Shown: positions 9,701 to 62,559 of the stretch, in pieces
Layout of the letters: each line of letters starts with the position of its first letter
How positions within the stretch are numbered: the first letter of the stretch is position 1
Assembly (NCBI GenBank): GCA_002269645.1
Contig: NIVC01000084.1
Coordinates: 496,001-560,000, forward strand
DNA from: Macrostomum lignano
Taxonomy: Eukaryota
Direction: 5' to 3'
Length of the DNA stretch: 64,000 nucleotides
Translations under genes and position numbers: made by a program
The notes under the pieces: generated by a model
What the model saw: only the letters and a program-made list of their open reading frames with translations
What the model was told of the DNA's origin: nothing
The model's database searches: none

Positions 9701-11520
9701 ATAAACTGCAACCTCATAGATTCAACAACCACAATAAACTGCAACCTCAAAAGTTTAACAACCACAATAAACTGCAGCCTCATAGATTCAACAACCACAA
9801 TAAACTGCAACCTCATAGATTCAACAACCACAATAAACTGCAACATCAAAAGTTCAACAACCACAATAAACTGCAACCTCAAGAGTTCAACAACCACAAT
9901 AAACTGCAGCCTCATAGATTCAACAACCACAATAAACTGCAACCTCAAAATTTCGACAACCACAATAAACTGCAACCTCAAAATTTCAACAACTACAATT
10001 AACTGCAACCTCAAAATTTCACAATAAACTGCAACCTCATAGATTCAACAACCACAATAAACTGCAACCTCATAGATTCAACAACCACAATGAACTGCAA
10101 CCTCAAAAGTTCAACAACCACAAAAAACTGCAACCTCATACATTCAACAACCACAATAAACTGCAACCTCATACATTCAACAACCACAATAAACTGCAAC
10201 CTCAAAAGTTCAACAACCACAATAAACTGCAAACTCATAGATTCAACAACCACAATAAACTGCAACCTCAAAAGTTCAACAACCGCAATAAACTGCATCC
10301 TCAAACATTCAACAACCACAATAAACTGCAACCTCAAAAGTTCAACAACCGCAATAAACTGCATCCTCATACATTCAACAACCACAATAAACTGCAACCT
10401 CAAAATTTCAACAACTACAATAAACTGCAACCTCAAAATTTCAACAACTACAATTAACTGCAACCTCAAAATTTCACAATAAACTGCAACCTCATAGATT
10501 CAACAACCACAATAAACTGCAACCTCATAGATTCAACAACCACAATGAACTGCAACCTCAAAAGTTCAACAACCACAAAAACTGCAACCTCATACATTCA
10601 ACAACCACAATAAACTGCAACCTCATACATTCAACAACCACAATAAACTGCAACCTCAAAAGTTCAACAACCACAATAAACTGCAAACTCATAGATTCAA
10701 CAACCACAATAAACTGCAACCTCAAAAGTTCAACAACCGCAATAAACTGCATCCTCAAACATTCAACAACCACAATAAACTGCAACCTCAAAAGTTCAAC
10801 AACCGCAATAAACTGCATCCTCATACATTCAACAACCACAATAAACTGCAACCTCAAAATTTCAACAACTACAATAAACTGCAACCTCAAAATTTCAACA
10901 ACTACAATTAACTGCAACCTCAAAATTTCACAATAAACTGCAACCTCATAGATTCAACAACCACAATAAACTGCAACCTCATAGATTCAACAACCACAAT
11001 GAACTGCAACCTCAAAAGTTCAACAACCACAAAAAACTGCAACCTCATACATTCAACAACCACAATAAACTGCAACCTCAAAAGTTCAACAACCACAAAA
11101 AACTGCAACCTCATACATTCAACAACCAACAACCACAAAAAACTGCAACCTCATACATTCAACAACCAACAACCACAAAAAACTGCAACCTCATACATTC
11201 AACAACCACAATAAACTGCAACCTCATAGATTCAACAACCACAATAAACTGCAACCTCAAAAGTTCAACAACCACAAAAAACTGCAACCTCATACATTCA
11301 ACAACCACAATAAACTGCAACCTCATACATTCAACAACCACAATAAACTGCAACCTCATAGATTCAACAACCACAATGAACTGCAACCTCAAAAGTTCAA
11401 CAACCACAAAAAACTGCAACCTCATACATTCAACAGCCACAATAAACTGCAACCTCATAGATTCAACAACCACAATAAACTGCAACCTCATAGATTCAAC
11501 AACCACAATAAACTGCAACC
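3775..11520 (+). repeat. 7.7-kb intronic satellite, 33-bp unit, with higher-order repeats
   Basis: Unit AACAACCACAATAAACTGCAACCTCATAGATTC, about 235 copies. Variant blocks recur at offsets of 2288 (4017 vs 6305) and 1907 (7385 vs 9292; 8104 vs 10011). Confidence 0.98.
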
Positions 11521-11586
11521 TGATAGAGTCACTAATAACAATAAACCGCAAACTAACAAGTAAACCCAAAATCATGCACCATCCAG

Positions 11587-19420: not shown

Positions 19421-19584
19421 TTAATAACTGACAAATGCTTCAGGGCGTGCTTAGGGTGTTTTCAAATTGACTGTGTTTTCTCTGCATGTAAATATATAAG
19501 CAAAAACTCAATTGCACTTCTTTTGTGCTTGATCATTTTTATATAAAAAATAACAAATCATTCGTTGATTTTATTGTCTCTTGA

Positions 19585-21375
19585 GGTTATTTAATGAAGC
19601 ACAGCTGCCACTCCTCAGATACTTCAGTGATGCACAGCTGCCACTCCTCAGATACTTCAGTGATGCACAGCTGCCACTCCTCATGTCCTTCAGTGATGCA
19701 CAGCTGCCACTCCTCAGATACTTCAGTGATGCACAGCTGCCACTCCTCAGATACTTCAGTGATGCACAGCTGCCACTCCTCAGATACTTCAGTGAGGTAC
19801 AGCTGCCACTCCTCAGGTCCTTCAGTGAGGCACAGCTGTCACTCCTCATGTCCTTCAGTGATGCACAGCTGCCACTCCTCAGATACTTCAGTGATGCACA
19901 GCTGCCACTCCTCAGGTCCTTCAGTGAGGCACAGCTGCCACTCCTCATGTCCTTCAGTGACGCACAGCTGCCACTCCTCATGTCCTTCAGTGACGCACAG
20001 CTGCCACTCCTCATGTCCTTCAGTGACGCACAGCTGCCACTCCTCAGATACTTCAGTGATGCACAGCTGCCACTCCTCAGATACTTCAGTGATGCACAGC
20101 TGCCACTCCTCAGATACTTCAGTGATGCACAGCTGCCACTCCTCAGATACTTCAGTGACGCACAGCTGCCACTCCTCAGATACTTCAGTGATGCACAGCT
20201 GCCACTCCTCCGATACTTCAGTGATGCACAGCTGCCACTCCTCAGATACTTCAGTGACGCACAGCTGCCACTCCTCAGATACTTCAGTGATGCACAGCTG
20301 TCACCACTCCTCAGATACTTCAGTGATGCACAGCTGCCACTCCTCAGATACTTCAGTGAGGTACAGCTGCCACTCCTCAGGTCCTTCAGTGAGGCACAGC
20401 TGCCACTCCTCAGATACTTCAGTGAGGTACAGCTGCCACTCCTCAGGTCCTTCAGTGAGGCACAGCTGTCACTCCTCATGTCCTTCAGTGAGGTACAGCT
20501 GCCACTCCTCAGGTCCTTCAGTGATGCACAGCTGCCACTCCTCAGATACTTCAGTGATGCACAGCTGCCACTCCTCAGATACTTCAGTGATGCACAGCTG
20601 TCACCACTCCTCAGATACTTCAGTGATGCACAGCTGCCACTCCTCAGATACTTCAGTGAGGTACAGCTGCCACTCCTCAGGTCCTTCAGTGAGGCACAGC
20701 TGCCACTCCTCAGATACTTCAGTGAGGTACAGCTGCCACTCCTCAGGTCCTTCAGTGAGGCACAGCTGTCACTCCTCATGTCCTTCAGTGAGGTACAGCT
20801 GCCACTCCTCAGGTCCTTCAGTGATGCACAGCTGCCACTCCTCAGATACTTCAGTGATGCACAGCTGCCACTCCTCAGATACTTCAGTGAGGTACAGCTG
20901 CCACTCCTCAGGTCCTTCAGTGAGGCACAGCTGTCACTCCTCATGTCCTTCAGTGATGCACAGCTGCCACTCCTCAGATACTTCAGTGATGCACAGCTGC
21001 CACTCCTCAGGTCCTTCAGTGAGGCACAGCTGCCACTCCTCATGTCCTTCAGTGACGCACAGCTGCCACTCCTCATGTCCTTCAGTGACGCACAGCTGCC
21101 ACTCCTCATGTCCTTCAGTGACGCACAGCTGCCACTCCTCAGATACTTCAGTGATGCACAGCTGCCACTCCTCAGATACTTCAGTGATGCACAGCTGCCA
21201 CTCCTCCGATACTTCAGTGATGCACAGCTGCCACTCCTCAGATACTTCAGTGACGCACAGCTGCCACTCCTCAGATACTTCAGTGATGCACAGCTGTCAC
21301 CACTCCTCAGATACTTCAGTGATGCACAGCTGCCACCACTCCTCATATACTTCAATGAGGCACAGCTGCCACTCC
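19585..21375. repeat. 1.8-kb intergenic 33-bp satellite with higher-order blocks
   Basis: ACTTCAGTGATGCACAGCTGCCACTCCTCAGAT, about 54 copies, with occasional 36-bp variants. Confidence 0.97.
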
Positions 21376-21740
21376 CCAGGTTTGTTTTGAAACCACAAAA
21401 TTCAATGCTCCACACGTGCAGACGTACTCTTATGCATGTGGGGTTGTCTAAGTTCACCCCAGATGCAATTTTTCAAACTCCATGAGTCGTAAATATGCAG
21501 GAACGGTAGCATGGCATCTATAGCATAAGGCTCTTCCAGTCATTCGCTAGATTAGAATGTATTAAACATTCCATTCGCTTAAAGAATTTCTGATCAATTT
21601 CTGCTTCTAAGCGGTTTCGAAACAAATTTACTTTTTTAAATTACTTCGAATCGAATAATTATTAAGTTGAAATGTTTTAGTAAATAAACTTGGTTAAAGA
21701 AAACTCTGATCTGTACGAAATCACTCGCTGCTTGCTAACA

Positions 21741-27389: not shown

Positions 27390-28140
27390 TGTGCTAAAGC
27401 CCCTGGTGCTAAAGCCCCTGTTGCTGGCGCCCATGTTGCTAAAGCCCTGGTGCTAAAGACCATGGTGCTAAAGCCCCTGTTGCTAAATCCCCTGGTGCTA
27501 AATCCCCTGGTGCTAAAGCCCCTGGTGCTAAAGCCCCTGGTGCTAAATCCCCTGGTGTTAAATCGCCTGGTGCTAAAGACCCTGGTGCTAAAGCACCTGG
27601 TGCTAAATCCCCTGGTGCTGAAGACCCTGGTGCTAAATCCCCTGGTGCTAAAGCCCCTGTTGCTGGCGCCCCTGTTGCTAAATCCCCTGGTGCTAAATCC
27701 CCTGGGTGCTAAAGCCCCTGGTGCTAAAGCCCCTGTTGCTAAAGCCCCTGGTGCTAAATCCCCTGGTGTTAAATCGCCTGGTGCTAAAGACCCTGGTGCT
27801 AAAGCCCCTGGTGCTAAATCCCCTGGTGCTGAAGACCCTGGTGCTAAATCCCCTGGTGCTAAAGCCCCTGGTGCTAAAGCCCCTGTTGCTAAAGCCCCTG
27901 TTGCTAAAGCCTGGTGCTAAAGCCCCTGGTGCTAAATCCCCTGGTGCTAAAGCCCCTTGGTGCTAAATCCCCTGGTGCTAAAGACCCTGTTGCTGGCGCC
28001 CATGTTGCTAAAGCCCCTGTTACTAAATCCCCTGGTGCTAAATCCCCTGGTGCTAAAGCCCCTGGTGCTAAAGCCCCTGGTGCTAAAGAATCTGTTGCTA
28101 AAGTCCCTGGTGCTAAAGTCCCTGGTGCTAAAACCGCTGC
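27390..28140 (+). repeat. 15-bp minisatellite in the WSC2 intron
   Basis: GGTGCTAAAGCCCCT and variants. Confidence 0.95.
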
Positions 28141-28282
28141 ACAGATCAGTCCATGTGCGTCACCTCAGAGATACCTGATGCTAAGAAATTCAGGCCCCAT
28201 AACCAAGCAATGAGGTGTATTTGTAATCTGTTTACAATTTATCTAAAACAATTGTATTCGCCAAAATCCATCAATTTTACAG

Positions 28283-28632
28283 GGCAACTAATCGGCTGTT
28301 TTAAGTCTGACGCATCGAAACTGGCTCTGCAGAACAAAATGACCGATCCAGTCGGCAAAAAGTTCATGTCGCACAGTATCTGTCAGGCCGCTTGCAAGGG
28401 CGCAGGATACACGTACTTTGGTCTGATGAAGGGCTCAGAATGCTATTGCGACAGTACCATCCAGATCAAAGATTCTCTGTTGTATGAGATCAGTTCGTGC
28501 AGACATCTGTGCTCAGGGAACGAGCAGCAATTGTGCGGCGGCTTGAAAACAATGCTTGTGTTTGACACTTTCCTCAAGTCGAGGTTCGGCTGCCCGGATA
28601 CAAGGCTGTTTAATAGTTGCGGTAAAGTCTAA
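28283..28632 (+). CDS. Secreted single-WSC-domain protein 2, exon 2 (148 aa total)
   Basis: ttttacag acceptor at 28282 (phase 1). WQLIGCF...MSHSICQAAC...YFGLMKGSECYCD...CRHLCSGNEQQLCGG. AATAAA near 28680. Confidence 0.9.
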
Positions 28633-28859: not shown

Positions 28860-30420
28860 GGGCTCCAGGGGACTTTAGCATTAAGGGGCTTTAGCACCAA
28901 GGGGCTTTAGCACCAAGGGGCTTTAGCACCAAGGGGCTTTAGCACCAGGGGCGCCAGCACCAAGGGGCTTTAGCATTAAGATGCTTAAGCACCAGGGGCT
29001 TTAGCACCACCGGTTTAGCACCAAGGGGCTTTAGCACCAGGGGCTTTAGCACCCAGTGGCTTTAGCAACAACAGGGGCTTTAGCAACAACAGGGGCTTTA
29101 GCAACAACAGGGGCTTTAGCAACAACAGGGGCTTTAGCACCCAGGGGCTTTAGCACCCAGGGGCTTTAGCACCCAGGGGCTTTAGCACCCAGGGGCTTTA
29201 GCAACAACAGGGGCTTTAGCAACAACAGGGGCTTTAGCAACAACAGGGGCTTTAGCAACAACAGGGGCTTTAGCAACAACAGGGGCTTTAGCAACAACAG
29301 GGGCTTTAGCAACAACAGGGGCTTTAGCAACAACAGGGGCTTTAGCAACAACAGGGGCTTTAGCAACAACAGGGGCTTTAGCACCCAGGGGCTTTAGCAC
29401 CCAGGGGCTTTAGCACCCAGGGGCTTTAGCACCCAGGGGCTTTAGCAACAACAGGGGCTTTAGCAACAACAGGGGCTTTAGCAACAACAGGGGCTTTAGC
29501 AACAACAGGGGCTTTAGCAACAACAGGGGCTTTAGCAACAACAGGGGCTTTAGCAACAACAGGGGCTTTAGCAACAACAGGGGCTTTAGCAACAACAGGG
29601 GCTTTAGCAACAACAGGGGCTTTAGCACCCAGGGGCTTTAGCACCCAGGGGCTTTAGCACCCAGGGGCTTTAGCACCCAGGGGCTTTAGCACCCAGGGGC
29701 TTTAGCACCCAGGGGCTTTAGCACCCAGGGGCTTTAGCACCCAGGGGCTTTAGCACCCAGGGGCTTTAGCACCCAGGGGCTTTAGCACCCAGGGGCTTTA
29801 GCACCCAGGGGCTTTAGCACCCAGGGGCTTTAGCACCCAGGGGCTTTAGCACCCAGGGGCTTTAGCACCCAGGGGCTTTAGCACCCAGGGGCTTTAGCAC
29901 CCAGGGGCTTTAGCACCCAGGGGCTTTAGCACCCAGGGGCTTTAGCACCCAGGGGCTTTAGCACCCAGGGGCTTTAGCACCCAGGGGCTTTAGCACCCAG
30001 GGGCTTTAGCACCCAGGGGCTTTAGCACCCAGGGGCTTTAGCACCCAGGGGCTTTAGCACCCAGGGGCTTTAGCACCCAGGGGCTTTAGCACCCAGGGGC
30101 TTTAGCACCCAGGGGCTTTAGCACCCAGGGGCTTTAACACCCAGGGGCTTTAGCACCCAGGGGCTTTAGCACCCAGGGGCTTTAGCACCCAGGGGCTTTA
30201 GCACCCAGGGGCTTTAACACCCAGGGGCTTTAGCACCCAGGGGCTTTAGCACCCAGGGGCTTTAGCACCCAGGGGCTTTAGCACCCAGGGGCTTTAGCAC
30301 CCAGGGGCTTTAGCACCATGTCTTTTAGGACCAGGGGCTTTAGCACCATGTCTTTTAGGACCAGTGGCTTTAGTACCAGAGGCACCAGCATCAGGAGCGC
30401 CAGCAGTGGTGGCGCCAAAG
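28860..30420 (-). repeat. 15/16/18-bp minisatellite, reverse complement of the WSC2 intron family
   Basis: GGGGCTTTAGCACCCA(G) and GGGGCTTTAGCAACAACA blocks; the 16-bp form is homogenised over about 29620-30310. Confidence 0.95.
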
Positions 30421-31223: not shown

Positions 31224-32961
31224 TCGTGTGCGCAAAAGGTATCCGGACAAAATATTGTTGGCTTTGCTTTCCGAGAGTTTGACATACTCCGGCAATTTAA
31301 AGCATCATTTGTATAATATGTCTATGGCCCAACTTCTGCCTGGAATTTTAACCCTGATATGCAAAATGGACTCATGCTGTTCATCCTTTTATTTCGAAAG
31401 CTTCGTTTTCAATCCGCGGATTTGCCACCCCAAGTTGTCACAAAATGGCAAGCTATTCCTTGGATCTCAAGAAGCGTGTCGCTACCGATTTGACTTCTGG
31501 AATGAGCGTGCGAATGTGTGCTGAGAAGTACTCAGTAGGGAAGAGCACCATCGGTGATTGGAAGAAGCTGCTGGATTCTGGCGACAGCCTGGAACCGAAG
31601 GAGAAATCGGGACGGCCGCGGACAGTCCGGACACCAGACTTCATGGCCAACCTCGAAGCCAAGCGGGCAGAAGACCCAACGAAGACGATGAGGCAAATTG
31701 CCCGAGAGGAAGGAGTGCATGAGAGCAATGTCCGCAATGCATTTTGGGAGATGGGCGTCAGGAGCTTCGTGCAGAGGGAGATCCCCATGCTGAACGCGGA
31801 TCAGCTGGGGCTTCGGGTTCAACGGTCACGGAGGCTCCTGAATGACCTCAAGACCTCTCCCGGAGTTGAAGTCATCTTCTTCACGGATGAAAAGAACTTC
31901 ACGCGGACACCCTACCGGAATCGCAGCTCTTCGCGCGTGCTGGCAGTGAGGAGCGGGACGTCTTCAACTCGCCACAGATGAAGCACCCGGCAACCATCAT
32001 GGTCTTCGGCCTCGTCGCTTCTGATGGCAAGAAAATGCAGCCAATATTTTTTGACAAGGGGTACCGACTGAATGGAGACGGGTACCTTGATGTGCTCCAG
32101 AAAGTGCTGCACTGGATTCGCAGTAACTATCCCGACAAGGTGCGGCCGGATGGCAGTTTTGCAGATGGCTGGAACTTTCGCTTCCAGCAGGATTCGGCTC
32201 TAGCACATACTCGCAATGACGTGCAGGCCTGGCTCAGCGCTCACTTCGGGCGCAAGCGCGTCTGGCTGAAGGAGGACTGGCCAGCCTACTCACCGGATCT
32301 AAATCCCCTGGATTTTTCGATCTGGAACTAGGTTGACAAGCGGGCCTGCAGAAGCTTCCACACATCCCTGGACTCGCTGAGATCTGCCATTCATGAGGCT
32401 TGGGAATCAGAGCTGACTCCGGAATATCTGGTGAGATGCTGCAAAGCGTTTCGTGGTCGTCTTGAGAAGGTGATTGCCCAAGGAGGTTCTCCAATCGTGG
32501 ATTAAATCGAGTCTGGCATGCAGAGCCGCTTGTTGGAACCATTTGAGCAGCACATGTCAGCAAGTGGGCCAGGTGATTGATTCGAGGAAGTCTGACGATC
32601 TTGAACTCTGTTAGAAAAAGCGACCGCTTCTTTAAATTAAGTTTCACTTTTGTTGCTCAATGCCCTCGTTACGTTTCTCTTGTTCGCATTTTAGAAAAAA
32701 ATCGTTTTTACGTTGCTAAATGGAACACGTGCTTGAAATTTCGCGATTTACGTCATCTACCTTTAATTAAGCCATTATCACCTTTCCAGGTGAAAATAGA
32801 CCGACCTGTTGTATTGGCCACTTTGCTGAAAAACGAGCTACGACAATTTGTTGCATTAAGTTGCGATGTGAAAATTCATTGATTTTGGGTGCAACACGTG
32901 CATATTTATCTGTCCTTCTCTGCAACACATGCAAGTGTCCGGATACTTTTTGCGTACCCGG
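31224..32961 (+). mobile_element. Full-length (1738 bp) inactivated Tc1/mariner element, maT-like
   Basis: Imperfect 26-bp TIRs (TCGTGTGCGCAAAAGGTATCCGGACA vs revcomp CCGGGTACGCAAAAAGTATCCGGACA), TA on both sides. Transposase runs 31445 to about 32505 with FTDEK, QQDS and SPDLNPLDF motifs. Frameshift near 31960-31980 and in-frame TAG at 32329. Confidence 0.92.
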
Positions 32962-41229: not shown

Positions 41230-42345
41230 CATATAAAAACTAATGAAAGTGTGTCATTTAAAAAATTAAGAAGCATCATGGAAGAATAAAAGAAGCGTAA
41301 CGTAAAAATCAAAAGAAGCGTCATGTCAGACATGAAAGAAATGTCATATAAAAATTAAATGAAGCTATAGTACAGTGCTGTGCTGGGGAGAATTACTGAG
41401 ACGTCAAGGCTCACAGAGAATAACTGAGATTACAGGGGGGTTTCTGAGATGTTAAAGCAAAAGTCAGAAGCTACTTCAAAGTACATGTACTTTACTTAAG
41501 TTTTTTATTGCATTCTTTGTTGGCTCGCCACGGGGGGCGCTGATAGAAGAAGAGTCATGTAAAAATAAAAGGAGCACTATGTATACATAAAATAAAAGTC
41601 ATGTCAAAGTTAAAAGATTCATTTGGGAATTGCTACGATGTCAAAGCTTGGAGGGAATCGTTATAGTGCTGTGATTCTTAAAGAAGGAATCACTTAAATG
41701 CCAAGGCTTAGGGAAGAAGAATTGCTGTGATTTCAAGGCTTTAGGTTGGGTGAAAGTTAGGTTTACGTCAGGTTTGGGTTGAGGGTTAGATTTTAGCGCG
41801 TTTCAAGGTTAACAGGGGATTTTTTAGATTTCAAGGTTTATGGGGGGCATCGCTGACATGTCAAGGCTTACGAGGGGAATCTATCTATCTATCTATAGCT
41901 GAGATGTCAAGGCTCACGGGGGAATAAATGAGATGTCAAGGCTAATGTCAGAAGCTACATGTAGTTTATTGGAAAAAAGTTATTACATTATTTGTTGGCT
42001 TCTCACGGGAGGGATCGCTGATAGAAAAAGCGTAATGTAAAAAAAAAAGAAGCTTCATGTCAAAGTTAAGAGATTCATTTGGGAATCCCTACGATGTCGA
42101 GGCTTGCAGGGAATCGCTATAATGCTGTAGTAGTGCTATAGACTCTTAGAGAGAATTACTGAAATTTCAATGCTTTAGGGTTAGGGTTAGGGTTAGGGTT
42201 AGGGTTAGAAAATAGACAGATTTTTTAAGATTTCAAGGCTTGTGGGAGCATTGCTGAGATGTCAAGGGGGAGTTGATATGTTAAGGCTTGTGGGGGGGGA
42301 TTGCTGACATGTCAAGGCTTACAAGGGTACTGGTAGCGTACTGAA
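41230..42345 (+). repeat. Degenerate repeat family with GCTGAGATGTCAAGGCT subunits, an internal ~470-bp duplication and an interstitial (TTAGGG)5
   Basis: 41520-41900 resembles 41990-42330. TTAGGG run at 42177-42208. The reverse complement of this family is at 52900-57050. Confidence 0.75.
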
Positions 42346-51150: not shown

Positions 51151-51864
51151 ATGCGGCTTGGGCGTCTATTGTCCTGGCAGCCTTTGTCGCGGCTTTTCCT
51201 TCTTCCAATAAATCCTATACTGATCTTTGCTATATTTTCTATAAGCGTTGGTTGCGCCGCGGCCACTTACATAATGACGGAGGGCTTTGCTCAATACCTG
51301 CTCAATACTGGTCGATTAGTTCGGCAACACAACGGCAATTTAGATAGCGGCAAAGGCTACTTGTTCAGATTTGATTATCAGCCGCCTCTGTTATTTGTGC
51401 TTCGATCAGATGTGGGCGATGCTGATATTTACGTATCCAGCTACGGTCGGTCCCCCACGCCAGACGATTATGACCTCAAAAGCGAGAACTTCTCGCTTGA
51501 CTTGGTGTTTGTGTCGGAAGAATTGAAGCCGCCAATATCCGTGTTGATCTACGCTTCGCCTCAGAGTAGCGATAATTCCACCTTCTTATTGGAGTTGTAT
51601 AAACACGATACGCTGTTAGATGAGTACAGTCGGATTCGAAATCAAATTGAGTCGCAGTCTGGCGGCTCTGTAGACGACTATGACGATTTTATGAGCGGAG
51701 CTTTTGACAGTCGCAGGCAAAATTCTATATTCACGTCGCAATCGGATAATAATAACAATGATAATAATGGCCAATCAGAAACACTAGGTTCATTGTTATA
51801 CCAGTTATTGGTTCGATTAGGTAGATTATTGTTATTTATATTAGAAGTAGCCGCTGACGCGTGA
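51151..51864 (+). CDS. C6orf120: UPF0669/C6orf120 homolog, intronless
   Basis: RSDVGDADIYVS...PTPDDYDLKS ~ human RSLKGDADLYVS...PSFDDYELQS. N-terminal hydrophobic segment and C-terminal hydrophobic tail. ttctcag acceptor at 51136. Confidence 0.87.
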   Translation: MRLGRLLSWQPLSRLFLLPINPILIFAIFSISVGCAAATYIMTEGFAQYLLNTGRLVRQHNGNLDSGKGYLFRFDYQPPLLFVLRSDVGDADIYVSSYGRSPTPDDYDLKSENFSLDLVFVSEELKPPISVLIYASPQSSDNSTFLLELYKHDTLLDEYSRIRNQIESQSGGSVDDYDDFMSGAFDSRRQNSIFTSQSDNNNNDNNGQSETLGSLLYQLLVRLGRLLLFILEVAADA

Positions 51865-53102: not shown

Positions 53103-56100
53103 ACTTACTTGACTTACACTTTCGATGGAGCGTCCAGGACGAAAGGCGCACTGATTGGGGGAGAGCGGGAAGTTCCTCTGCTCCACGAGGAGGAGGCACC
53201 AGAACACCAGCCTTTCCATCAGTTTGAGGAAAAAAGACGTCAGACTGATACGGCGGTAAGCTTTGGCAGATATGATAGTCTCCCTTCCCTGGTTTGGGTA
53301 TGAAGACTACCGTAACCTCTTGTCAGGCTCTTGGCACGTACCCGGTGGGCCTAGCTGCGGTGCGGCACGTGGGAAAGAGCTGGTGAGCATGATGTCCAGC
53401 GATTCCCCAGGGTTCTCAGCAAGCCGGCCGTCCGGTCTTTTAATGACTGAGAGCTTTGACATTTTGTCGAGGGTGAGAGCCTTAACCACGCGGAAAATAG
53501 GACAGGTGCCTTCTTACTCCGTGCAGCATTGGCGCCATTTGTCGGACTTGGCTTTCCTGGTTTCTTGCTTAGAGTCGCGGATTGCGTCTTTTAGGCGGCC
53601 AGGTCAGCTGGGTCCTTGCTCTTGCGAGCTTTCCGTTGGAGGCGCTTTGCCTTGCGCCGGAGGGATCCGAGCGCCGGGTGCCACCAGGGGGCGGATTTTT
53701 GCCTTTGTAGGCTTTGAGAGGACAGGAAGCCTCGTGGGCTGTCAGGACGGTCTTGCTGATCAAGTCTGCAAGGTCATCCACTTCCTGACAGGTGGTTGGA
53801 GCGGCGGTGGTCAGCTGATCTGTCTGACATTTCAGAGTTTCCGCGGAAGCCGTCCAGTCAGTGTTCCGAACGTTACTTTTCCACAGGGTGAGGCTTGGGG
53901 CAAGAGGCCGGATTGCAATCGAAAACAAACGAAGCGATGGTCAGATAGAGACTCCTCTTCGTCTCACACCTCCCAGTCCTTGACTAAAGGAGCCAAGCCA
54001 TGGGAGACGAGGGTAACGTCGAAGGCCTCCGTCCATCGCCCGTTGTCAAAGTGGGGGTTCCACCAATGTTGCAAAACTCAGTGTTGGTGGTGCAGATGTA
54101 AGCAAGGAATTCCTCGCCTCTGCTGTTGGAGGTATTACTGCCCCAGTGGGTGTGGTGGGCGTGGTGGGCATTGACATCGCCCGCCACCAGCAGCTCGAAC
54201 CTACGGTTAGAACAGTAGTCCACGAGGGAGATGAGGTTGGGTGGAACCGCGGGGCCATCGCCAGGGATATAAATCGAGGCGATGATGACCGTGCGGTTGG
54301 TGATAATGTGGTTGGACCGAATGACACATAGGTCTCTGTCAGAGAGGTCCGGTCTGTGCCAAGCTTTGAGATGGATAGACACAAACATGGCTGCTCTGGG
54401 GTTTTAGGGGTCCTGAAAACAGTCAAAACCAGTAGGAATATTCGGAATTTTACCTTTCTTCGTCCAGGGCTCCTGGAGAAGGTTTTACAAAGTTTGCCAC
54501 CTGCATCAGGTTGGTCGAGGCCGCGATGCAGTGGTGTAGATTTAGCTGCAGGATGTCCGCTCCGGGGATTCCACGAGTGGTCCGCGCAGCTTCCTGCCGG
54601 TTCAGGGCGAGTTGTGCAGGAGAGCTGTCTCTTCTGCCTTGCCGATAGCTCCAGGCTCCAGTTCCATGGGCTCCTCCCGGATGGATTCCATGGTCGAGGG
54701 CGGGGCCGCCACCTGGGCGGCATTTTCGCTCTCGGCCCGGTTTCGGGGGGGCCGCAGTGGTGACACTGGGCTGGAGGTTGCTGCGGTTGTGGGCCCTGGC
54801 GGTGTCCAGCAGCTGCTTCGCGCGCTGAGTCAGACCAGAGCGGATAGTGTTCCGGGCGGGTTTCCGGCCCTTTCCACGTCCGCCTGTTGCTGCAGCTTTC
54901 GCGGCTTTCCCTCTGACAGGGTCCACGTCCTCAGAGGGGTCGTGACGACCGGGAGCTTCTTTTCCTGGGCGTTTCTGCCCGGCAGAGCCCCCGACTGCCC
55001 GCTTACGCTTCTCCGGGGGCGGTGGACGGGTGGCGTCAGACTCAAAGCTAAAGAGCTGAATCTGCATCAGCCCGACAGAGATGATGGGCATGTCCGGATA
55101 GCGGAGCATCCAGCTATCCGACAGTCCAAGAATAGCCGTGAAACCGTCTCCGCCCGGCTTGGAGATGGTCTCGTGAACTACGACGCCATTGGCTGGCAGC
55201 TCCGGGTTGGTAGCCACTAGCAGGCGACGCAGCTCGTCGGCCTTGGTGATGGAGCTGCGAGCCGGAATCCAGGCACGGTGCCGGTGTGCACCTGTTTATC
55301 TATCCTATAGATAAACAGGTTTTCCAGCTCCGTACCCCAGTCGAAGGCTTTTAGCATCTCGAGGAGCTGCTGTCCCGACTGACTGTCGGCGGGCTGGATA
55401 TGGAGGGCTTGGTCCTCGATTTTCGTCTTTTGGACTTGAATAGCGGTACCACTCAAGGCCATCTAGACCAAGTGGGAGTCCGGCCTGCGCCAGAGTAGGT
55501 CGAGCTGTTCGGCCGTAAGAGGCGTCTCCTGGCCTTGGATAATCAGGGCCGGCTGCCTCTTGGCCATAGCCGCGTAGGTGCACTTTGGCTCGGTGGTTTC
55601 GCCAGCACCCCCCGCTTTGGATCCCTCCACGGCCGTGGGAGCTTTCACACGGGCAGAGGTCCCGTCACGGGAGGGGCCAGCCGCACCAGGAGCTTCGGCG
55701 GCACCTGACGCTTCTGACCGGCGCGCGGGGTCCACCCCCTTGTCGGATGTCGGCTCCTCCGGGGGGTGGCTTAAGCCCGTACCGGCCCGACCGCTAGCAA
55801 CCGAGAAACTCCCCGGCTAAGAGCCCGCGGCTTGGGGAAACCAGAGGCCGAACCAAAGGACCATCAGCGCGGTGCTAACACTGGGCCCTTGAGGGGGACA
55901 AGTGGCTGTCCCCGGAGCCTGCGGACTGGCCGCATACCCTGTTAAGGTCAGAGGGTGGTACCTGTTCCTCAGAGCCGTGGCCAGAGGTACCTGATACGCA
56001 CAGGTTCACTTCCGGGCGGAGCCCCGTACCCAAATTGGCCAGCTGGCCACGGATGGGTTGCCACCGCCGGAGCCCAGTCAGTCCAGCAGCCTTAGAGCTG

Positions 56101-57748: not shown

Positions 57749-57808
57749 ATGCATCAAGTTTGCTTGCTGACAGCACTCTTGATTCTGGCATCTGCTGCCG
57801 CTGATGCG
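57749..57808 (+). CDS. Tyr/Ser/Pro-rich secreted polyprotein, exon 1 (signal peptide)
   Basis: MHQVCLLTALLILASAAADA, then gtaagt (phase 0). Not in the ORF track. Confidence 0.85.
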
Positions 57809-57914
57809 GTAAGTGCAATCAACTAATAAATGTATTTCATGCTTCTGTTTGCTCATACTCGTTCGGTTTTATGTCATTGCTAATGTTTTTTGAAAACTGT
57901 TATGAAAATTTTAG

Positions 57915-59507
57915 AAACCGTTAAACGATTTTTCTTCGTACTACGATCCAAGCTACTATCCAACTAGCTTCGATGTCTCTTACAAGAAGCGTGAATACAG
58001 CTCGTACTACCCGAGCAGCTACTCCTCTTTCTACCCGAGCAGCTACTCCTCTTTCTACCCAAGCAGCTACTCCTCTTTCTACCCAAGCAGCTACTCCTCT
58101 TACTACCCAAGCAGCTACTCCTCTTTCTACCCGAGCAGCTACTCCTCTTACTACCCAAGCAGCTACTCCTCTTTCTACCCGAGCAGCTACTCCTCTTTCT
58201 ACCCAAGCAGCTACTCCTCTTACTACCCAAGCAGCTACTCCTCTTACTACCCAAGCAGCTACTCCTCTTACTACCCAAGCAGCTACTCCTCTTACTACCC
58301 AAGCAGCTACTCCTCTTACTACCCAAGCAGCTACTCCTCTTACTACCCAAGCAGCTACTCCTCTTACTACCCAAGCAGCTACTCCTCTTACTACCCGAGC
58401 AGCAGCTACCCGTCCTACTCGTACTCTTACAAGAAGCGTGAATATAGCTCCTACTACTCCTCTTACTACCCAAGCAGCTACTCCTCTTACTACCCAAGCA
58501 GCTACTCATCTTTCTACCCAAGCAGCTACTCCTCTTTCTACCCAAGCAGCTACTCCTCTTTCTACCCGAGCAGCTACTCCTCTTTCTACCCAAGCAGCTA
58601 CTCCTCTTACTACCCGAGCAGCAGCTACCCGTCCTACTCGTACTCTTACAAGAAGCGTGAATATAGCTCCTACTACTCCTCTTACTACCCAAGCAGCTAC
58701 TCCTCTTACTACCCAAGCAGCTACTCATCTTTCTACCCAAGCAGCTACTCCTCTTTATACCCAAGCAGCTACTCCTCTTACTACCCGAGCAGCTACTCCT
58801 CTTTCTACCCGAGCAGCTACTCCTCTTTCTACCCAAGCAGCTACTCCTCTTACTACCCGAGCAGCAGCTACCCGTCCTTCTCGTACTCTTACAAGAAGCG
58901 TGAATATAGCTCCTACTACTCCTCTTACTACCCAAGCAGCTACTCCTCTTACTACCCAAGCAGCTACTCCTCTTACTACCCGAGCAGCTACTCCTCTTAC
59001 TACCCAAGCAGCTACTCCTCTTACTACCCAAGCAGCTACGCCTCTTACTACCCGAGCAGCTACTCCTCTTACTACCCGAGCAGCTACTCCTCTTTCTACC
59101 CAAGCAGCTACGCCTCTTACTACCCAAGCAGCTACGCCTCTTACTACCCAAGCAGCTACTCCTCTTACTACTCCTCGTACATGCCAAGCAGTTCGTATTG
59201 GAAGAAACGGGATATGGATTATGGAAGTTATGGATCCTACCCGTCTGCCGATATTGGAAGCTTTGACCCCTATCCGTCTGGCGGCACTGGAAGCTTTGAC
59301 CCCTATCCGTCTGGCGGCACTGGAAGCTTTGACCCCTATCCGTCTGGCGGCACTGGAAGCTTTGACCCCTATCCGTCTGGCGGCACTGGAAGCTTTGACC
59401 CCTATCCGTCTGGCGGCACTGGAAGCTTTGACCCCTATCCGTCTGGCGGCACTGGAAGCTACAATCCGTATCCGTCAGGTGATAAGGGAAGCTACGGATC
59501 TTACTAA
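57915..59507 (+). CDS. Tyr/Ser/Pro-rich secreted polyprotein, exon 2 (550 aa total, five KKR sites)
   Basis: attttag acceptor at 57914 (phase 0). Open frame KPLNDFSSYYDPSYYPTSFDVSYKKREYSSYYPSS(YSSYYPSS)n...YWKKRDMDYGSYG...(GSFDPYPSGGT)n...GSY*. The ORF track shows only the tail (59181..59507). Confidence 0.85.
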   Translation, partial: KPLNDFSSYYDPSYYPTSFDVSYKKREYSSYYPSSYSSFYPSSYSSFYPSSYSSFYPSSYSSYYPSSYSSFYPSSYSSYYPSSYSSFYPSSYSSFYPSSYSSYYPSSYSSYYPSSYSSYYPSSYSSYYPSSYSSYYPSSYSSYYPSSYSSYYPSSYSSYYPSSSYPSYSYSYKKREYSSYYSSYYPSSYSSYYPSSYSSFYPSSYSSFYPSSYSSFYPSSYSSFYPSSYSSYYPSSSYPSYSYSYKKREYSSYYSSYYPSSYSSYYPSSYSSFYPSSYSSLYPSSYSSYYPSSYSSFYPSSYSSFYPSSYSSYYPSSSYPSFSYSYKKREYSSYYSSYYPSSYSSYYPSSYSSYYPSSYSSYYPSSYSSYYPSSYASYYPSSYSSYYPSSYSSFYPSSYASYYPSSYASYYPSSYSSYYSSYMPSSSYWKKRDMDYGSYGSYPSADIGSFDPYPSGGTGSFDPYPSGGTGSFDPYPSGGTGSFDPYPSGGTGSFDPYPSGGTGSFDPYPSGGTGSYNPYPSGDKGSYGSY

Positions 59508-60297
59508 TCTCGTGGCAAAGGAAATGTCAGTTTTAATCCACCAAAGCTTGTATTCGATGAAGGAATCTAGTTGTGTTAGTTGACATTAACAAACTGAACT
59601 GATTCTGTTTTGTCACCTTTAAAACGGACAATTGGTGGTGGGACAATAAACAACTAAATTATTGAAGAGTTTGAGTATATCAATCACTATTTTTCTTCGA
59701 GCCTTAATTTTTGTATTTTTCTTTTATTATTTGACAGTTAGCTATTCTCCGATACATCTCAAATCTGCATCACCTTAGCTGGCTTCAGCCGCGGTTCACC
59801 TTACCGCGAGTGGCTGATTCATTGAGCAAACTTTGGCCCGCGGAGCCACTAGCTATAGCGGTAGTGTGGACCGGCCTCAATTAGATGCGTCACTTGTTGC
59901 AAAATTGCATTACTCATTCGTTATGCTTATACAATGGTCAATATTTAAGTTGGGGCGACAGAATGTCGTATGCAGTTGCTTTGCGCTGAGCACAGTTCCA
60001 GGGGGGGGGGGCTCAGTGGGCGAATTTTCTCTCATTCAAACCGGCAAGTTGCTGCAGTACAGTGGGTAAGAGCGGATTGCTGAGAACAATGGACAGGCAG
60101 TTTTATAGCTCTGTGGCATGCACGAGGCTTTTAAATTAAGTCTCCGTTCCAGCCATCTCTTGTTCGTCCCCTTTCGTTAAAAAAACTATAAGTTTTAGAG
60201 ACACCGAATATGATATAGAAAAGCGCTATTTGGCTACAAAAATTTGGCTACACCAAAAGCGACATTCTGAATAGGGTAAAAAGTTAGATACAGCAAA

Positions 60298-62559
60298 ATG
60301 TCACGCGTCAAGATTGTTCGTGAGTACCTGAACACCAGCAACGACTCGAAGACGCAATCTGCTGCAAGTCCAGCTACTGTAACAGCTTCAAGCCAGGCTC
60401 AGCCGAGGCCGCAGCAGCCGGCGCCGTCGCAACAACAGCCGCCGCAACAGCCGCAATCTCGGCAACAGGACGCACTCAAACCCGCCATCGGATCTGCTAA
60501 CAAATCACCTCGTGCTTTAGTCGCCGCCTCCACTGGAAATTTGCAAGATGCAGTTGTAAAAAAGCTAGACTTTGAGGAGCTGAGAAAGAATCTGATTCAA
60601 TCCAAGCAATTGTACGAGGATCCCAAATTTCCAGCAGAGGGTCGCAGCATTTTTCCTTCGAGGCCTAATCAGAGGTATGTGTGGAAGCGGCCGAAAGAAA
60701 TCTGCCAATCGCCAATGTTTATTAGCGATGGTGTCAGCCGGTTCGATGTTAAACAAGGAGAACTGGGCGATTGTTGGCTACTGGCTTCAATTGCTTCCCT
60801 TTCTATGAACAAAAGTTTATTTGACCGAGTGGTTCCTCCCGGTCAGGATTTCGACGCAGGCTATTGCGGAATGTTCCGTTTCCGGTTTTGGCACTTTGGC
60901 CGCTGGAAAGAGGTGGTTGTCGATGATCGGCTGCCTACTAAGGCGGGGCGGCTCTGCTTCATGCGCAGCCAGGATCGCAACGAGTTCTGGTCGGCCCTAC
61001 TAGAGAAAGCCTACGCTAAAGTCAACGGTAGCTATGAGGCCCTGACAGGTGGGAGCCAGTCCGAGGCTATGGAGGACTTCACCGGCGGCCTGTGCGAAAA
61101 CTTTGATCTCAACAAGGCACCGGCCGACTTGTTTAACGTGATGTTTCAGGCCAACAAAAGCGAGTCTCTAATGGGATGCAGCATTGAGAGCGAGGAGATT
61201 GAGGGCGAACTAGATAACGGCCTGATCACTGGACATGCTTACTCTGTGACTGACGTCAGAAATTGCAAACTGAAAAACGGCCAGGAAGAATCGCTAGTCC
61301 GGGTTCGCAACCCGTGGGGAAACGAGTGCGAATGGAAGGGCGACTGGAGCGACCGGAGCCCCCTGTGGAACCAAGTCAACGCGGATGAGAAATCCCGGCT
61401 GAAAATGGACGCCAGCGATGATGGCGAGTTCTGGATGGCGTTCAAAGACTTTGTCCAGGAGTTCACTAAACTGGAGATTTGCCACCTGTGCCCAGAGACC
61501 ATGTCCGGCACTGTGAAGGGCGCCGCCGCCAAGAAGCGTCGTTGGGAGATCAGCATAGAGAAGGGGGAGTGGAAGAAGAACGTGAGCGCCGGCGGCTGCA
61601 GGAACTTTATTGACAGCTTCCACACTAATCAGCAGTTCCGCGTGGAGATTGTCGACCCGGATGAAGAGGACGATGAAAATCTGGGCACCATTATTGTCGG
61701 CCTAATGCAGAAGGACGTGCGCAAGGTCACAGTTGGCGGCGAGTATTTCACCATTGGCTATGCTATTTACCAGCTGAGAGGCCAGAGCGACAGCCCCCTT
61801 GACCAGAAGTTTTTCCGCTATAACAAACAGATGGATAAATCGGCGTTTGTAAATCAACGCGAGGTGAGCGGCCGGCACAAGCTGCCCCCGGGTCGATACG
61901 TGATCGTGCCCTCCACCTTTAATCCGAACGAAGAGGCGCAATTCATAATGCGCATGTTCTCCGAAAAGCCGAACCTCGCGGCTGTGCTGGACTCGGAGAC
62001 TAAGATGGAGGTCAGTCCGGCCATCGCCGCCCCCGTCAGCGCACCGGAGAACGAGGAACCGTTGCGCAAAGCTTTCCAGGGCTTCTCCGGCGGCGCGGGT
62101 CGAATTCACGCATTTCAGCTGCAGCAGATCCTGAACAGATCCTTCGGCAAAGAGGTGAAGGAGTTTTCCGGATTTAGCGCCGAAGCCTGTCGCAGCATGC
62201 TTGCTCTGATGGACCTGAACATGTCCGGCTACATGGAATTCGACGAGTTCAAAGTGCTTTGGAACCAGATCCGCCTGCTGAAGACAATTTTCAAAGAGAA
62301 AGACGCCGATGGAAATGGCTCATTTGACTCGTTCGAGCTGCGCGACGCTTTGAAAGCTGCCGGCTACAATCTGAGCAACAAGGTGTTCGAGACGGTTGCC
62401 ATGCGGTATACGGACCCAACTAAGGGCGTCGTGAGCTTCGAAGATTTCATCCTGCTATCAGTGCGGATGAGGACCGCTTTTACTACCTACGAGGCGACTG
62501 TGAAGACAAAGGAGGCTTTGGAGCAGGACAACTTCATCAAGATGATGATGTATATTTGA
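60298..62559 (+). CDS. Classical calpain (CysPc + C2-like + penta-EF-hand), 753 aa, intronless CDS
   Basis: Catalytic triad motifs QGELGDCWLLA, GHAYSVT, RVRNPWG. Domain III GEW...SAGGCRN, YVIVPSTF. C-terminal EF hands. Q/P-rich N-terminus. Confidence 0.97.
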   Translation: MSRVKIVREYLNTSNDSKTQSAASPATVTASSQAQPRPQQPAPSQQQPPQQPQSRQQDALKPAIGSANKSPRALVAASTGNLQDAVVKKLDFEELRKNLIQSKQLYEDPKFPAEGRSIFPSRPNQRYVWKRPKEICQSPMFISDGVSRFDVKQGELGDCWLLASIASLSMNKSLFDRVVPPGQDFDAGYCGMFRFRFWHFGRWKEVVVDDRLPTKAGRLCFMRSQDRNEFWSALLEKAYAKVNGSYEALTGGSQSEAMEDFTGGLCENFDLNKAPADLFNVMFQANKSESLMGCSIESEEIEGELDNGLITGHAYSVTDVRNCKLKNGQEESLVRVRNPWGNECEWKGDWSDRSPLWNQVNADEKSRLKMDASDDGEFWMAFKDFVQEFTKLEICHLCPETMSGTVKGAAAKKRRWEISIEKGEWKKNVSAGGCRNFIDSFHTNQQFRVEIVDPDEEDDENLGTIIVGLMQKDVRKVTVGGEYFTIGYAIYQLRGQSDSPLDQKFFRYNKQMDKSAFVNQREVSGRHKLPPGRYVIVPSTFNPNEEAQFIMRMFSEKPNLAAVLDSETKMEVSPAIAAPVSAPENEEPLRKAFQGFSGGAGRIHAFQLQQILNRSFGKEVKEFSGFSAEACRSMLALMDLNMSGYMEFDEFKVLWNQIRLLKTIFKEKDADGNGSFDSFELRDALKAAGYNLSNKVFETVAMRYTDPTKGVVSFEDFILLSVRMRTAFTTYEATVKTKEALEQDNFIKMMMYI

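Follow-up and report, generated by a model that had tools for sequence, protein, structure and literature searches.

A two-exon gene of Macrostomum lignano encoding a Tyr-rich repeat protein with KKR motifs at its module boundaries

We analyzed a 64,000-nt stretch of the genome of the flatworm Macrostomum lignano (hereafter the window) and found in it a genuine, transcribed two-exon gene that encodes a Tyr-rich protein built of short tandem repeats. Position 1 of the window is position 496001 of contig NIVC01000084.1, and all positions below follow the window numbering. The gene occupies positions 57749-59507, which corresponds to about 553749-555507 on the contig. Its product is most likely a lineage-restricted protein, with an unusual boundary-motif architecture in which all five Lys-Lys-Arg (KKR) motifs stand at module boundaries; the gene is already held in GenBank, yet it is uncharacterized. 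The gene model and the Tyr reading frame are well supported and very probably correct. The overall explanation that we propose, to which we give an even chance, is that the gene encodes a secreted, Tyr-cross-linked structural precursor that is processed by a convertase.

All features of the gene lie on the plus strand. Exon 1 (57749-57808) consists of the start codon and the remainder of a 20-residue signal peptide (MHQVCLLTALLILASAAADA), and the start of the GenBank coding sequence (CDS) coincides with it. The intron (57809-57914) is 106 nt long and in phase 0, with the borders GTAAGT...TTTTAG. As read from the sequence, the TAG of its acceptor doubles as the in-frame stop that bounds the downstream Tyr frame. 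Exon 2 (57915-59507) comprises 1593 nt, or 531 codons including the TAA stop codon of the Tyr frame (59505-59507), where the GenBank CDS ends as well. The first ATG of the Tyr frame within exon 2 is at 59181. An AATAAA at 59645-59650, 138 nt past the stop, is the likely polyadenylation signal.

Exon 2 opens with an N-terminal piece of 23 amino acids (aa) at 57915-57983 (KPLNDFSSYYDPSYYPTSFDVSY), which represents a diverged version of the end of a block and, should the adjoining KKR be cleaved, would serve as a pro-piece. Four octamer blocks follow, each introduced by a KKR motif that is coded AAG AAG CGT and followed by Glu. Motif 1 (57984-57992) precedes block 1 (57993-58430, 146 aa), which is composed of EYSSYYPSS, 16 units of YSS(Y/F)YPSS, and the end SYPSYSYSY. 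Motif 2 (58431-58439) precedes block 2 (58440-58649, 70 aa), motif 3 (58650-58658) precedes block 3 (58659-58892, 78 aa), and motif 4 (58893-58901) precedes block 4 (58902-59201, 100 aa), in which YASYYPSS variants are present and which ends in SSYMPSSSYW. Motif 5 (59202-59210) is coded AAG AAA CGG, differs from motifs 1-4 by two synonymous changes, and is followed by Asp. The C-terminal module (59211-59504, 98 aa) contains six exact GSFDPYPSGGT units of 33 nt each between degenerate copies.

A first-pass annotation of the window, made from the sequence alone, had proposed this gene as a signal-peptide exon of 20 codons spliced in phase 0 (GTAAGT...TTTTAG) into a frame of 531 codons, with five KKR sites delimiting pieces of 23, 146, 70, 78, 100, and 98 aa. 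All of these coordinates, including the five KKR starts, were reproduced, and the absence of a start codon from the Tyr frame until 59181 was confirmed in the sequence. That annotation had also remarked that the list of open reading frames (ORFs) displays other frames instead of this one; the list indeed gives a 536-aa Thr/Ala ORF and a 407-aa ORF on the minus strand, and the Tyr frame appears in it only as a 108-aa tail. The genus that the first-pass annotation had guessed, Macrostomum, was correct as well.

Two independent look-ups showed that GenBank assembly GCA_002269645.1 contains a plus-strand CDS whose ends are exactly 57749..59507. The gene is therefore not hidden, as had been supposed, but is on record with an unnamed product of 372 aa. 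We read the annotated coordinates as the ends of the CDS because the entry for the neighboring calpain gene likewise spans exactly ATG to stop. Without splicing, the exon-1 frame reaches a stop at 57824-57826, and a CDS of 57749..59507 therefore needs the splice from exon 1 to the Tyr frame or an equivalent of it; the Thr/Ala frame stops at 59583. The underlying Mlig_3_7 annotation combined RNA-seq assemblies (StringTie/TACO), a de novo transcriptome mapped with BLAT, and TransDecoder ORFs, and only coding "core genes" were submitted (PMC5730564).

The annotated product of 372 aa is 178 aa shorter than the 550 aa of the collinear reading. Inside exon 2, no canonical GT-AG intron was found that would by itself remove 534 nt. 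We enumerated 294 single-gap products of 372 aa, and none of the ten most seamless was present in the protein collection when looked up. Products with two introns number 262, and 64 products of the type "two blocks plus three units" were enumerated as well. The most likely reading of the 372-aa product is that its repeats were collapsed in a transcript assembled from short reads.

The calpain entry (60298-62559) shows a similar difference on a smaller scale. Its GenBank product has 748 aa and the collinear ORF has 753 aa, and the missing residues are SQQQP (15 nt) in a Gln/Pro-rich stretch. An "intron" of 15 nt is too short to be real, and the pipeline appears to write length differences between transcript and genome as introns. 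The low-complexity parts of Mlig_3_7 proteins may be systematically shortened.

An open frame of 1.6 kb is in itself no evidence for a gene here, because the minisatellites of the window give long multi-frame ORFs anyway. Tandem Repeats Finder detected about 25 minisatellite arrays in the window, several of which can be read as ORFs of 150-630 aa in two or even three frames at once, as at 19595-21379. The Tyr-rich region is itself composed of a 24-nt array (58001-59171, 48 copies) and then a 33-nt array (59236-59460). We compared the codons of diverged copies with the consensus, using the unit variants, the first and last units of the blocks, the N-terminal pseudo-repeat, the fifth KKR junction, and the degenerate 11-mers. 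In the Tyr frame, 20/39 differing codons were synonymous. The corresponding values were 4/36 (the Thr/Ala frame) and 6/35 for the other forward frames and 3/39, 9/35, and 1/36 for the reverse frames. The nucleotide differences at codon positions 1, 2, and 3 numbered 10, 18, and 29, respectively (29/57 at position 3, p = 0.005), and 11/18 distinct single-nucleotide variant types in unambiguous register were synonymous against an expected 22% (p = 3.5e-4); these p-values are indicative because the copies share duplication and gene conversion and because some alignments were translation-guided. Ser was preserved between the AGC and TCN codon families, and the non-synonymous changes in the Tyr frame were mostly Y/F, S/A, E/D, F/Y, and D/N. 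The earlier claim that the variation among units is mostly synonymous or conservative thus holds.

The Tyr frame is also preserved in the lengths of the repeats. The blocks measure 447, 219, 243, and 309 nt; each of these lengths is divisible by 3, and none by 24. The first 11-mer copy has lost 9 nt without a change of frame, and the frame also continues across the transition between the 24-nt and the 33-nt arrays. The fifth motif, the oldest KKR copy, retains K-K-R despite its two synonymous changes, and its coding as AAG AAA CGG indicates that the motif has been kept by protein-level selection and not merely by DNA copying. Judged by these comparisons among repeat copies, the protein sequence of the Tyr frame is under purifying selection. 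The neighboring UPF0669 gene was found on contig NIVC01000084.1 only, with no copy elsewhere, and no allelic or homeologous copy is therefore at hand for a ratio of non-synonymous to synonymous substitution rates (Ka/Ks).

The signal peptide was called by a heuristic that uses hydropathy and the residues at positions -3 and -1. The core, VCLLTALLILA, has a mean Kyte-Doolittle value of 3.0 over residues 4-14, and Ala is present at both -3 and -1. By this heuristic, the protein carries the N-terminal signal peptide expected of a dibasic precursor. Six mini-exons of the form ATG-(15-35 codons)-GTRAGT were found on both strands of the window (128 kb), and only exon 1 has a hydrophobic core. This mini-exon lies 106 nt upstream of the Tyr frame, on the same strand and in phase. 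Secretion of the Tyr-rich protein is likely.

The mature chain of about 530 aa (60.7 kDa) contains 40% Ser, 28% Tyr, 12% Pro, 5% Gly, and 4% Phe, and neither Cys nor His. Octamer blocks 1-4 contain 32-36% Tyr and 46-49% Ser and are devoid of Cys and Lys. The four blocks start alike (EYSSYY...), and blocks 1-3 also end alike (...SSSYPSYSYSY). The C-terminal module has a composition of 24% Gly, 19% Ser, 15% Pro, 13% Tyr, and 10% Asp. Basic residues are concentrated in the KKR motifs, which hold 5/5 Arg and 10/12 Lys; the two remaining Lys are K21, directly after the signal peptide, and K544, near the C-terminus within the last piece. The motifs are preceded by Tyr (four) or Trp (one) and followed by Glu (four) or Asp (one). 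These compositions agree with the first-pass description of four Cys-free and Lys-free pieces built from Y-S-S-(Y/F)-Y-P-S-S octamers and of a last piece built from GSFDPYPSGGT, which comprises the six exact units together with degenerate ones and the single Lys at K544. A repetitive, Cys-free chain that is predicted to be secreted and contains 28% Tyr overall has the high Tyr content expected of quinone-tanned structural proteins. No oxidase gene is present in the 64-kb window.

We examined the KKR motifs as possible processing sites. All five read (Y/W)-K-K-R-(E/D), and none has the Arg at P4 that defines the furin motif R-X-(K/R)-R. The five KKR(E/D) sites fit the dibasic type of PC1/3, PC2, and Kex2, with K-R or R-R between the units and a P1' residue that is not hydrophobic. 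The earlier assignment of KKR to a prohormone-convertase/furin type consequently stands for the dibasic enzymes and fails for furin, P4 being Tyr or Trp and not Arg. In the absence of Arg at P4, furin cleavage is not expected, and cutting would need a convertase of the regulated-pathway PC2/PC1 type in the producing cell. The K-K-R order kept through codon change, the placement at module boundaries, and the closing of a short leader by one of the motifs favor processing. The same is true of the counts of 10 Lys and 151 Tyr, as Lys is too scarce to be the main cross-linking partner. Furthermore, the 23-aa N-terminal piece ending in KKR looks like a pro-region. From the sequence, the chance that the KKR motifs are cleaved appears to be about even or slightly better.

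The main rival explanation, which is possible though doubtful, is that the same secreted protein remains uncleaved and that KKR(E/D) serves as charged punctuation in an intact protein of ~60 kDa. The motifs might then provide Lys nucleophiles for quinone cross-links, cation-pi "stickers" that pair with Tyr and so promote condensation, or elements of solubility or spacing. The lack of the P4 Arg required by furin-type enzymes of the constitutive pathway is consistent with this explanation, and so is the local +3/-1 patch formed by KKR and its acidic neighbor in a chain that is otherwise uncharged. Moreover, Lys-quinone adducts are an accepted route of eggshell tanning in flatworms (PMC11727788). 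However, 10 Lys for 151 Tyr at an irregular spacing of 70-146 residues is a poor stoichiometry for cross-links or stickers. A role of charge only should allow shuffling of K and R, whereas the exact K-K-R order survives codon change. In addition, the motifs lie exactly at module boundaries and behind a short leader, as they do in known polyproteins.

A further alternative, which we consider improbable, accepts the cleavage of the precursor and regards the products as bioactive, namely as seminal-fluid, pheromone-like, or defense peptides. The polyprotein layout of signal peptide, pro-piece, and repeats between basic sites would suit such a function, and many lineage-restricted M. lignano genes with signal peptides are limited to the prostate and evolve fast (PMC5977470; PMC7336406). 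The pieces, however, are pure low-complexity sequences of 70-146 aa with variable numbers of units, no Cys, no Gly for amidation, and no net positive charge, and they are unlike neuropeptides, antimicrobial peptides, or folded signaling proteins. Classic neuropeptide precursors release conserved peptides shorter than about 50 aa, often with an amidation Gly. The length of the repeat pieces and the Tyr or Trp, never Gly, before each KKR bear out the first-pass view that this is not a classic neuropeptide precursor.

In our proposed explanation, by contrast with bioactive products, the gene most likely encodes a lineage-restricted structural or adhesive precursor. A secreted protein that is Cys-free, disordered, and one-third Tyr is most economically understood as feedstock for cohesive extracellular material, and a structural, Tyr-cross-linked role seems plausible from the composition. 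The protein would enter the secretory pathway and be packed into granules as a disordered condensate driven by Tyr-Tyr and Tyr-Pro contacts. The KKR motifs would be cut by a PC2/PC1-like convertase, and the ends would be trimmed by a carboxypeptidase. The predicted products are the 23-aa leader (one Lys and three Asp), four Tyr/Ser/Pro peptides of 8-17 kDa in which the N-terminal Glu would be the sole charged residue, and one acidic Gly/Ser/Pro/Tyr peptide. After release, the oxidation of Tyr to 3,4-dihydroxyphenylalanine (DOPA)/quinone or the formation of di-tyrosine links would set the material. The outcome would be a hardened or sticky extracellular structure, most plausibly eggshell or material of the shell or cement glands, and less plausibly an epidermal or male-gland secretion. 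The first-pass annotation had likewise suggested a convertase-processed structural or adhesive precursor, destined for eggshell granules, rhabdites, glue, or the stylet. Flatworm eggshells are known to harden through Tyr chemistry (PMC11727788; PMC5544531). In M. lignano, shell granules are formed in the oocytes, and shell and cement glands lie around the antrum (PMC4490696). A more specific proposal, tentative and rather unlikely in its full form, is that the gene represents a new biomaterial-precursor family of the Macrostomum lineage, in which the products of a convertase-processed polyprotein, freed of KKR, condense and are oxidatively cross-linked into eggshell or egg cement. Such an eggshell chemistry would have arisen independently of the vitelline proteins with a trematode eggshell synthesis (TES) domain that parasitic flatworms possess.

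Several points weigh against this explanation. DOPA was not found in the adhesive footprints of free-living flatworms (PMC9229212), which lowers the "glue" option relative to eggshell or cement. Most of the screened lineage-specific secreted proteins of M. lignano are prostate (seminal-fluid) products, and this base rate stands against an eggshell function (PMC5977470). The searches described below found no homologue in any species, the function being proposed from composition, and KKR without Arg at P4 is unlikely to be cut by the ubiquitous furin. In regard to the gene model, the GenBank product has 372 aa in place of 550 aa and was not reproduced by any of the products looked up, and the repeat number given here for the mRNA is therefore a predicted one. 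Finally, the repeat copies used in the codon comparison are not fully independent owing to gene conversion and higher-order block duplication, and translation guided some of their alignments.

To place the protein among known families, we used several kinds of search. Word-indexed searches of 5.8 billion proteins with the 550-aa product and with a chimera of its less repetitive N- and C-terminal parts gave no match even at E <= 10; the same searches also missed the GenBank product of the locus itself, which indicates that composition filtering probably blinds them and that this negative result is weak. When the 550-aa product was scanned against Pfam-A at E <= 1, 0 families were matched. The C-terminal 108 aa, used as the query of an exhaustive HMMER search, yielded 116 hits; the 7 inspected among the top ten were unrelated proteins with 11-residue repeats, which we rejected as periodicity matches. 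In metagenomes, back-translated motifs produced 388 pattern matches, and not one was confirmed. Exact look-ups of the calpain ORF of the window and of the 108-aa ORF found neither on record. No second copy of the gene was detected next to the calpain paralogue (69% identical) or in any other part of the window. The shell/cement-gland transcript RNA815_13 (Arbore et al.) was considered and rejected, as it is a 16-kb vWA/collagen-like transcript and not this gene, and the supplements of Weber et al. 2018 offered neither primers nor probes whose sequences could be compared with the locus. The first-pass annotation had recognized no family, and no known family was found in the protein, Pfam, or metagenome searches.

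The 550-aa product contains no TES domain (IPR012615), which places it outside the known eggshell family of flatworms. The trematode eggshell precursors (the TES vitelline proteins B/C; p14/p48 of Schistosoma) are, like the protein described here, secreted, Cys-free, and Tyr-rich (PMC11727788). They are stored in granules and hardened by the oxidation of Tyr, through DOPA-Lys/His or metal-catechol links (PMC11727788), and we infer the same for the M. lignano protein. Unlike trematodes, Macrostomum has no vitellaria, and its shell granules arise in the oocyte (PMC4490696). Tyr amounts to 28-36% here and to about 12-15% in the trematode proteins; Lys is almost absent here outside KKR, and those proteins have neither the octamer repeat nor KKR-delimited modules.

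Marine glue proteins rich in Tyr and Ser include the mussel foot proteins (Mfp-1, with the decapeptide AKPSYPPTYK) and the Ser/Tyr polyproteins Pc3 of the sandcastle worm. These proteins are secreted, disordered, and tandem-repeated, with Tyr, Ser, and Pro as their prevailing residues; condensation takes place in granules, and the proteins rely on the modification of Tyr (to DOPA) or of Ser (by phosphate). Mussel proteins have Lys in every repeat, whereas the basic residues here are placed at module boundaries, and no sequence relationship was detected. Insect resilin consists of Gly/Ser/Pro/Tyr repeats that are cross-linked by di-tyrosine. The C-terminal GSFDPYPSGGT module has a resilin-like composition and no chitin-binding domain, and the likeness is compositional only.

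Polyproteins cut at basic sites are exemplified by the nematode polyprotein allergens (RxKR), profilaggrin, yeast alpha-factor (KR-EAEA), and neuropeptide precursors. The layout that they share with the protein described here is a signal peptide, a short leader, and repeats that each end in a conserved basic motif plus an acidic residue. The M. lignano protein differs in its low-complexity units of 70-146 aa, in the lack of an amidation Gly, and in having KKR without Arg at P4, and its cleavage is predicted only. In regard to plant extensins, which carry the isodityrosine motif Tyr-X-Tyr (PMC11727788), the SYSYSY ends of blocks 1-3 are similar, again as a compositional likeness only. The extensin motif Ser-Pro(3-5) is absent, consecutive Pro occurs nowhere in the chain, and there are five Y-x-Y motifs in total.

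Two less probable explanations concern the 5' end and the reading frame. It is highly improbable that exon 2 is translated without a signal peptide, in which case a spliced leader (SL) joined to the acceptor at 57914 would give M-KPLNDF..., a cytosolic Tyr-rich protein. The 35-nt SL of M. lignano ends in ...TTGCATG and would donate an in-frame ATG (PMC8629364), the acceptor is in phase 0, and about 30-39% of M. lignano genes are SL trans-spliced. However, the RNA-based GenBank CDS begins at 57749 and not at the acceptor, and the GTAAGT donor closes a textbook signal peptide 106 nt upstream, which is unique in the window. Very unlikely, and the least probable of all, is that the locus is a mere non-coding 24-nt/33-nt minisatellite or is translated in the 536-aa Thr/Ala frame (57973-59583): minisatellites are indeed frequent in the window (about 25), several of them can be read as long ORFs in 2-3 frames, and the Thr/Ala frame does have its own ATG and a score of 43.7 bits against Cornifin/SPRR (PF02389; cut-off 34.8), but only the Tyr frame shows a synonymous excess, KKR is kept through codon changes that alter residues of the Thr/Ala frame, the GenBank CDS ends at the Tyr stop at 59507 and not at 59583, the Thr/Ala product lacks a signal peptide as well as the SPRR-defining Cys, Lys, and Gln, and both arrays and all five junctions hold one frame. 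The preference of the first-pass annotation for the Tyr frame over the Thr/Ala frame is thus upheld by the synonymous excess and the ends of the GenBank CDS.

The Cornifin/SPRR assignment was rejected because it concerns the wrong frame and a product without Cys, Lys, or Gln. The 8-residue Pro periodicity is shared with this mammalian epidermal family, and the Thr/Ala product has no transglutaminase-substrate termini. This match is an example of a false family hit that is driven by periodicity and lies above the Pfam gathering threshold.

The neighboring genes, which encode enkurin, a UPF0669/C6orf120-like protein, calpain, and an EF-hand protein, gave no functional hint. The UPF0669/C6orf120-like gene is a single-exon secreted-protein gene at 51151-51864 (PF17065, E 2e-12), 6 kb upstream, and its ends are identical in GenBank. 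The 753-aa ORF at 60298-62559 is 99% identical to calpain BOX15_Mlig020951g1, and the window is identical to the GenBank calpain locus over 13,703 nt. A 159-aa ORF at 28153-28632 contains a WSC carbohydrate-binding domain (PF01822, E 5e-16) and is flanked by arrays that are reverse complements of each other, at 27391-28132 (unit GTGCTAAAGCCCCTG) and 28865-30347 (unit CCAGGGGCTTTAGCAC). A 178-aa ORF at 31445-31981 with helix-turn-helix domains of the IS630/Tc1-type transposase is probably a transposon remnant. The about 25 distinct minisatellites of positions 1-57000 have periods of 15-50 nt (one of 4 nt). Among them are a 33-nt unit in 236 copies at 3789-11521 and another example of multi-frame ORFs at 19571-21485. 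An interstitial telomere-type repeat, TTAGGG x 5.7, is located at 42175-42208. Furthermore, a GC-rich block at 53500-56000 (53-66%, compared with about 35-45% around it) contains overlapping ORFs of 200-300 aa on both strands with no Pfam match.

The public gene model under-represents the repeats of this protein (372 vs 550 aa). The octamer pieces contain neither Lys nor Arg, and standard tryptic proteomics would therefore miss them; this blind spot may explain the obscurity of the protein. If the protein is merely another fast-evolving orphan secretory product, the finding is ordinary. With about one-third Tyr and its charge confined to removable linkers, it would offer an unusually clean design, made by nature, for peptides that form condensates and can be cross-linked. 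If the proposed role is true, the gene would be the first molecular candidate for a Tyr-hardened secretion in an early-branching free-living flatworm, and the genetic tractability of M. lignano (RNA interference and transgenesis) would open a route to the pre-parasitic origin of eggshell and cement chemistry.

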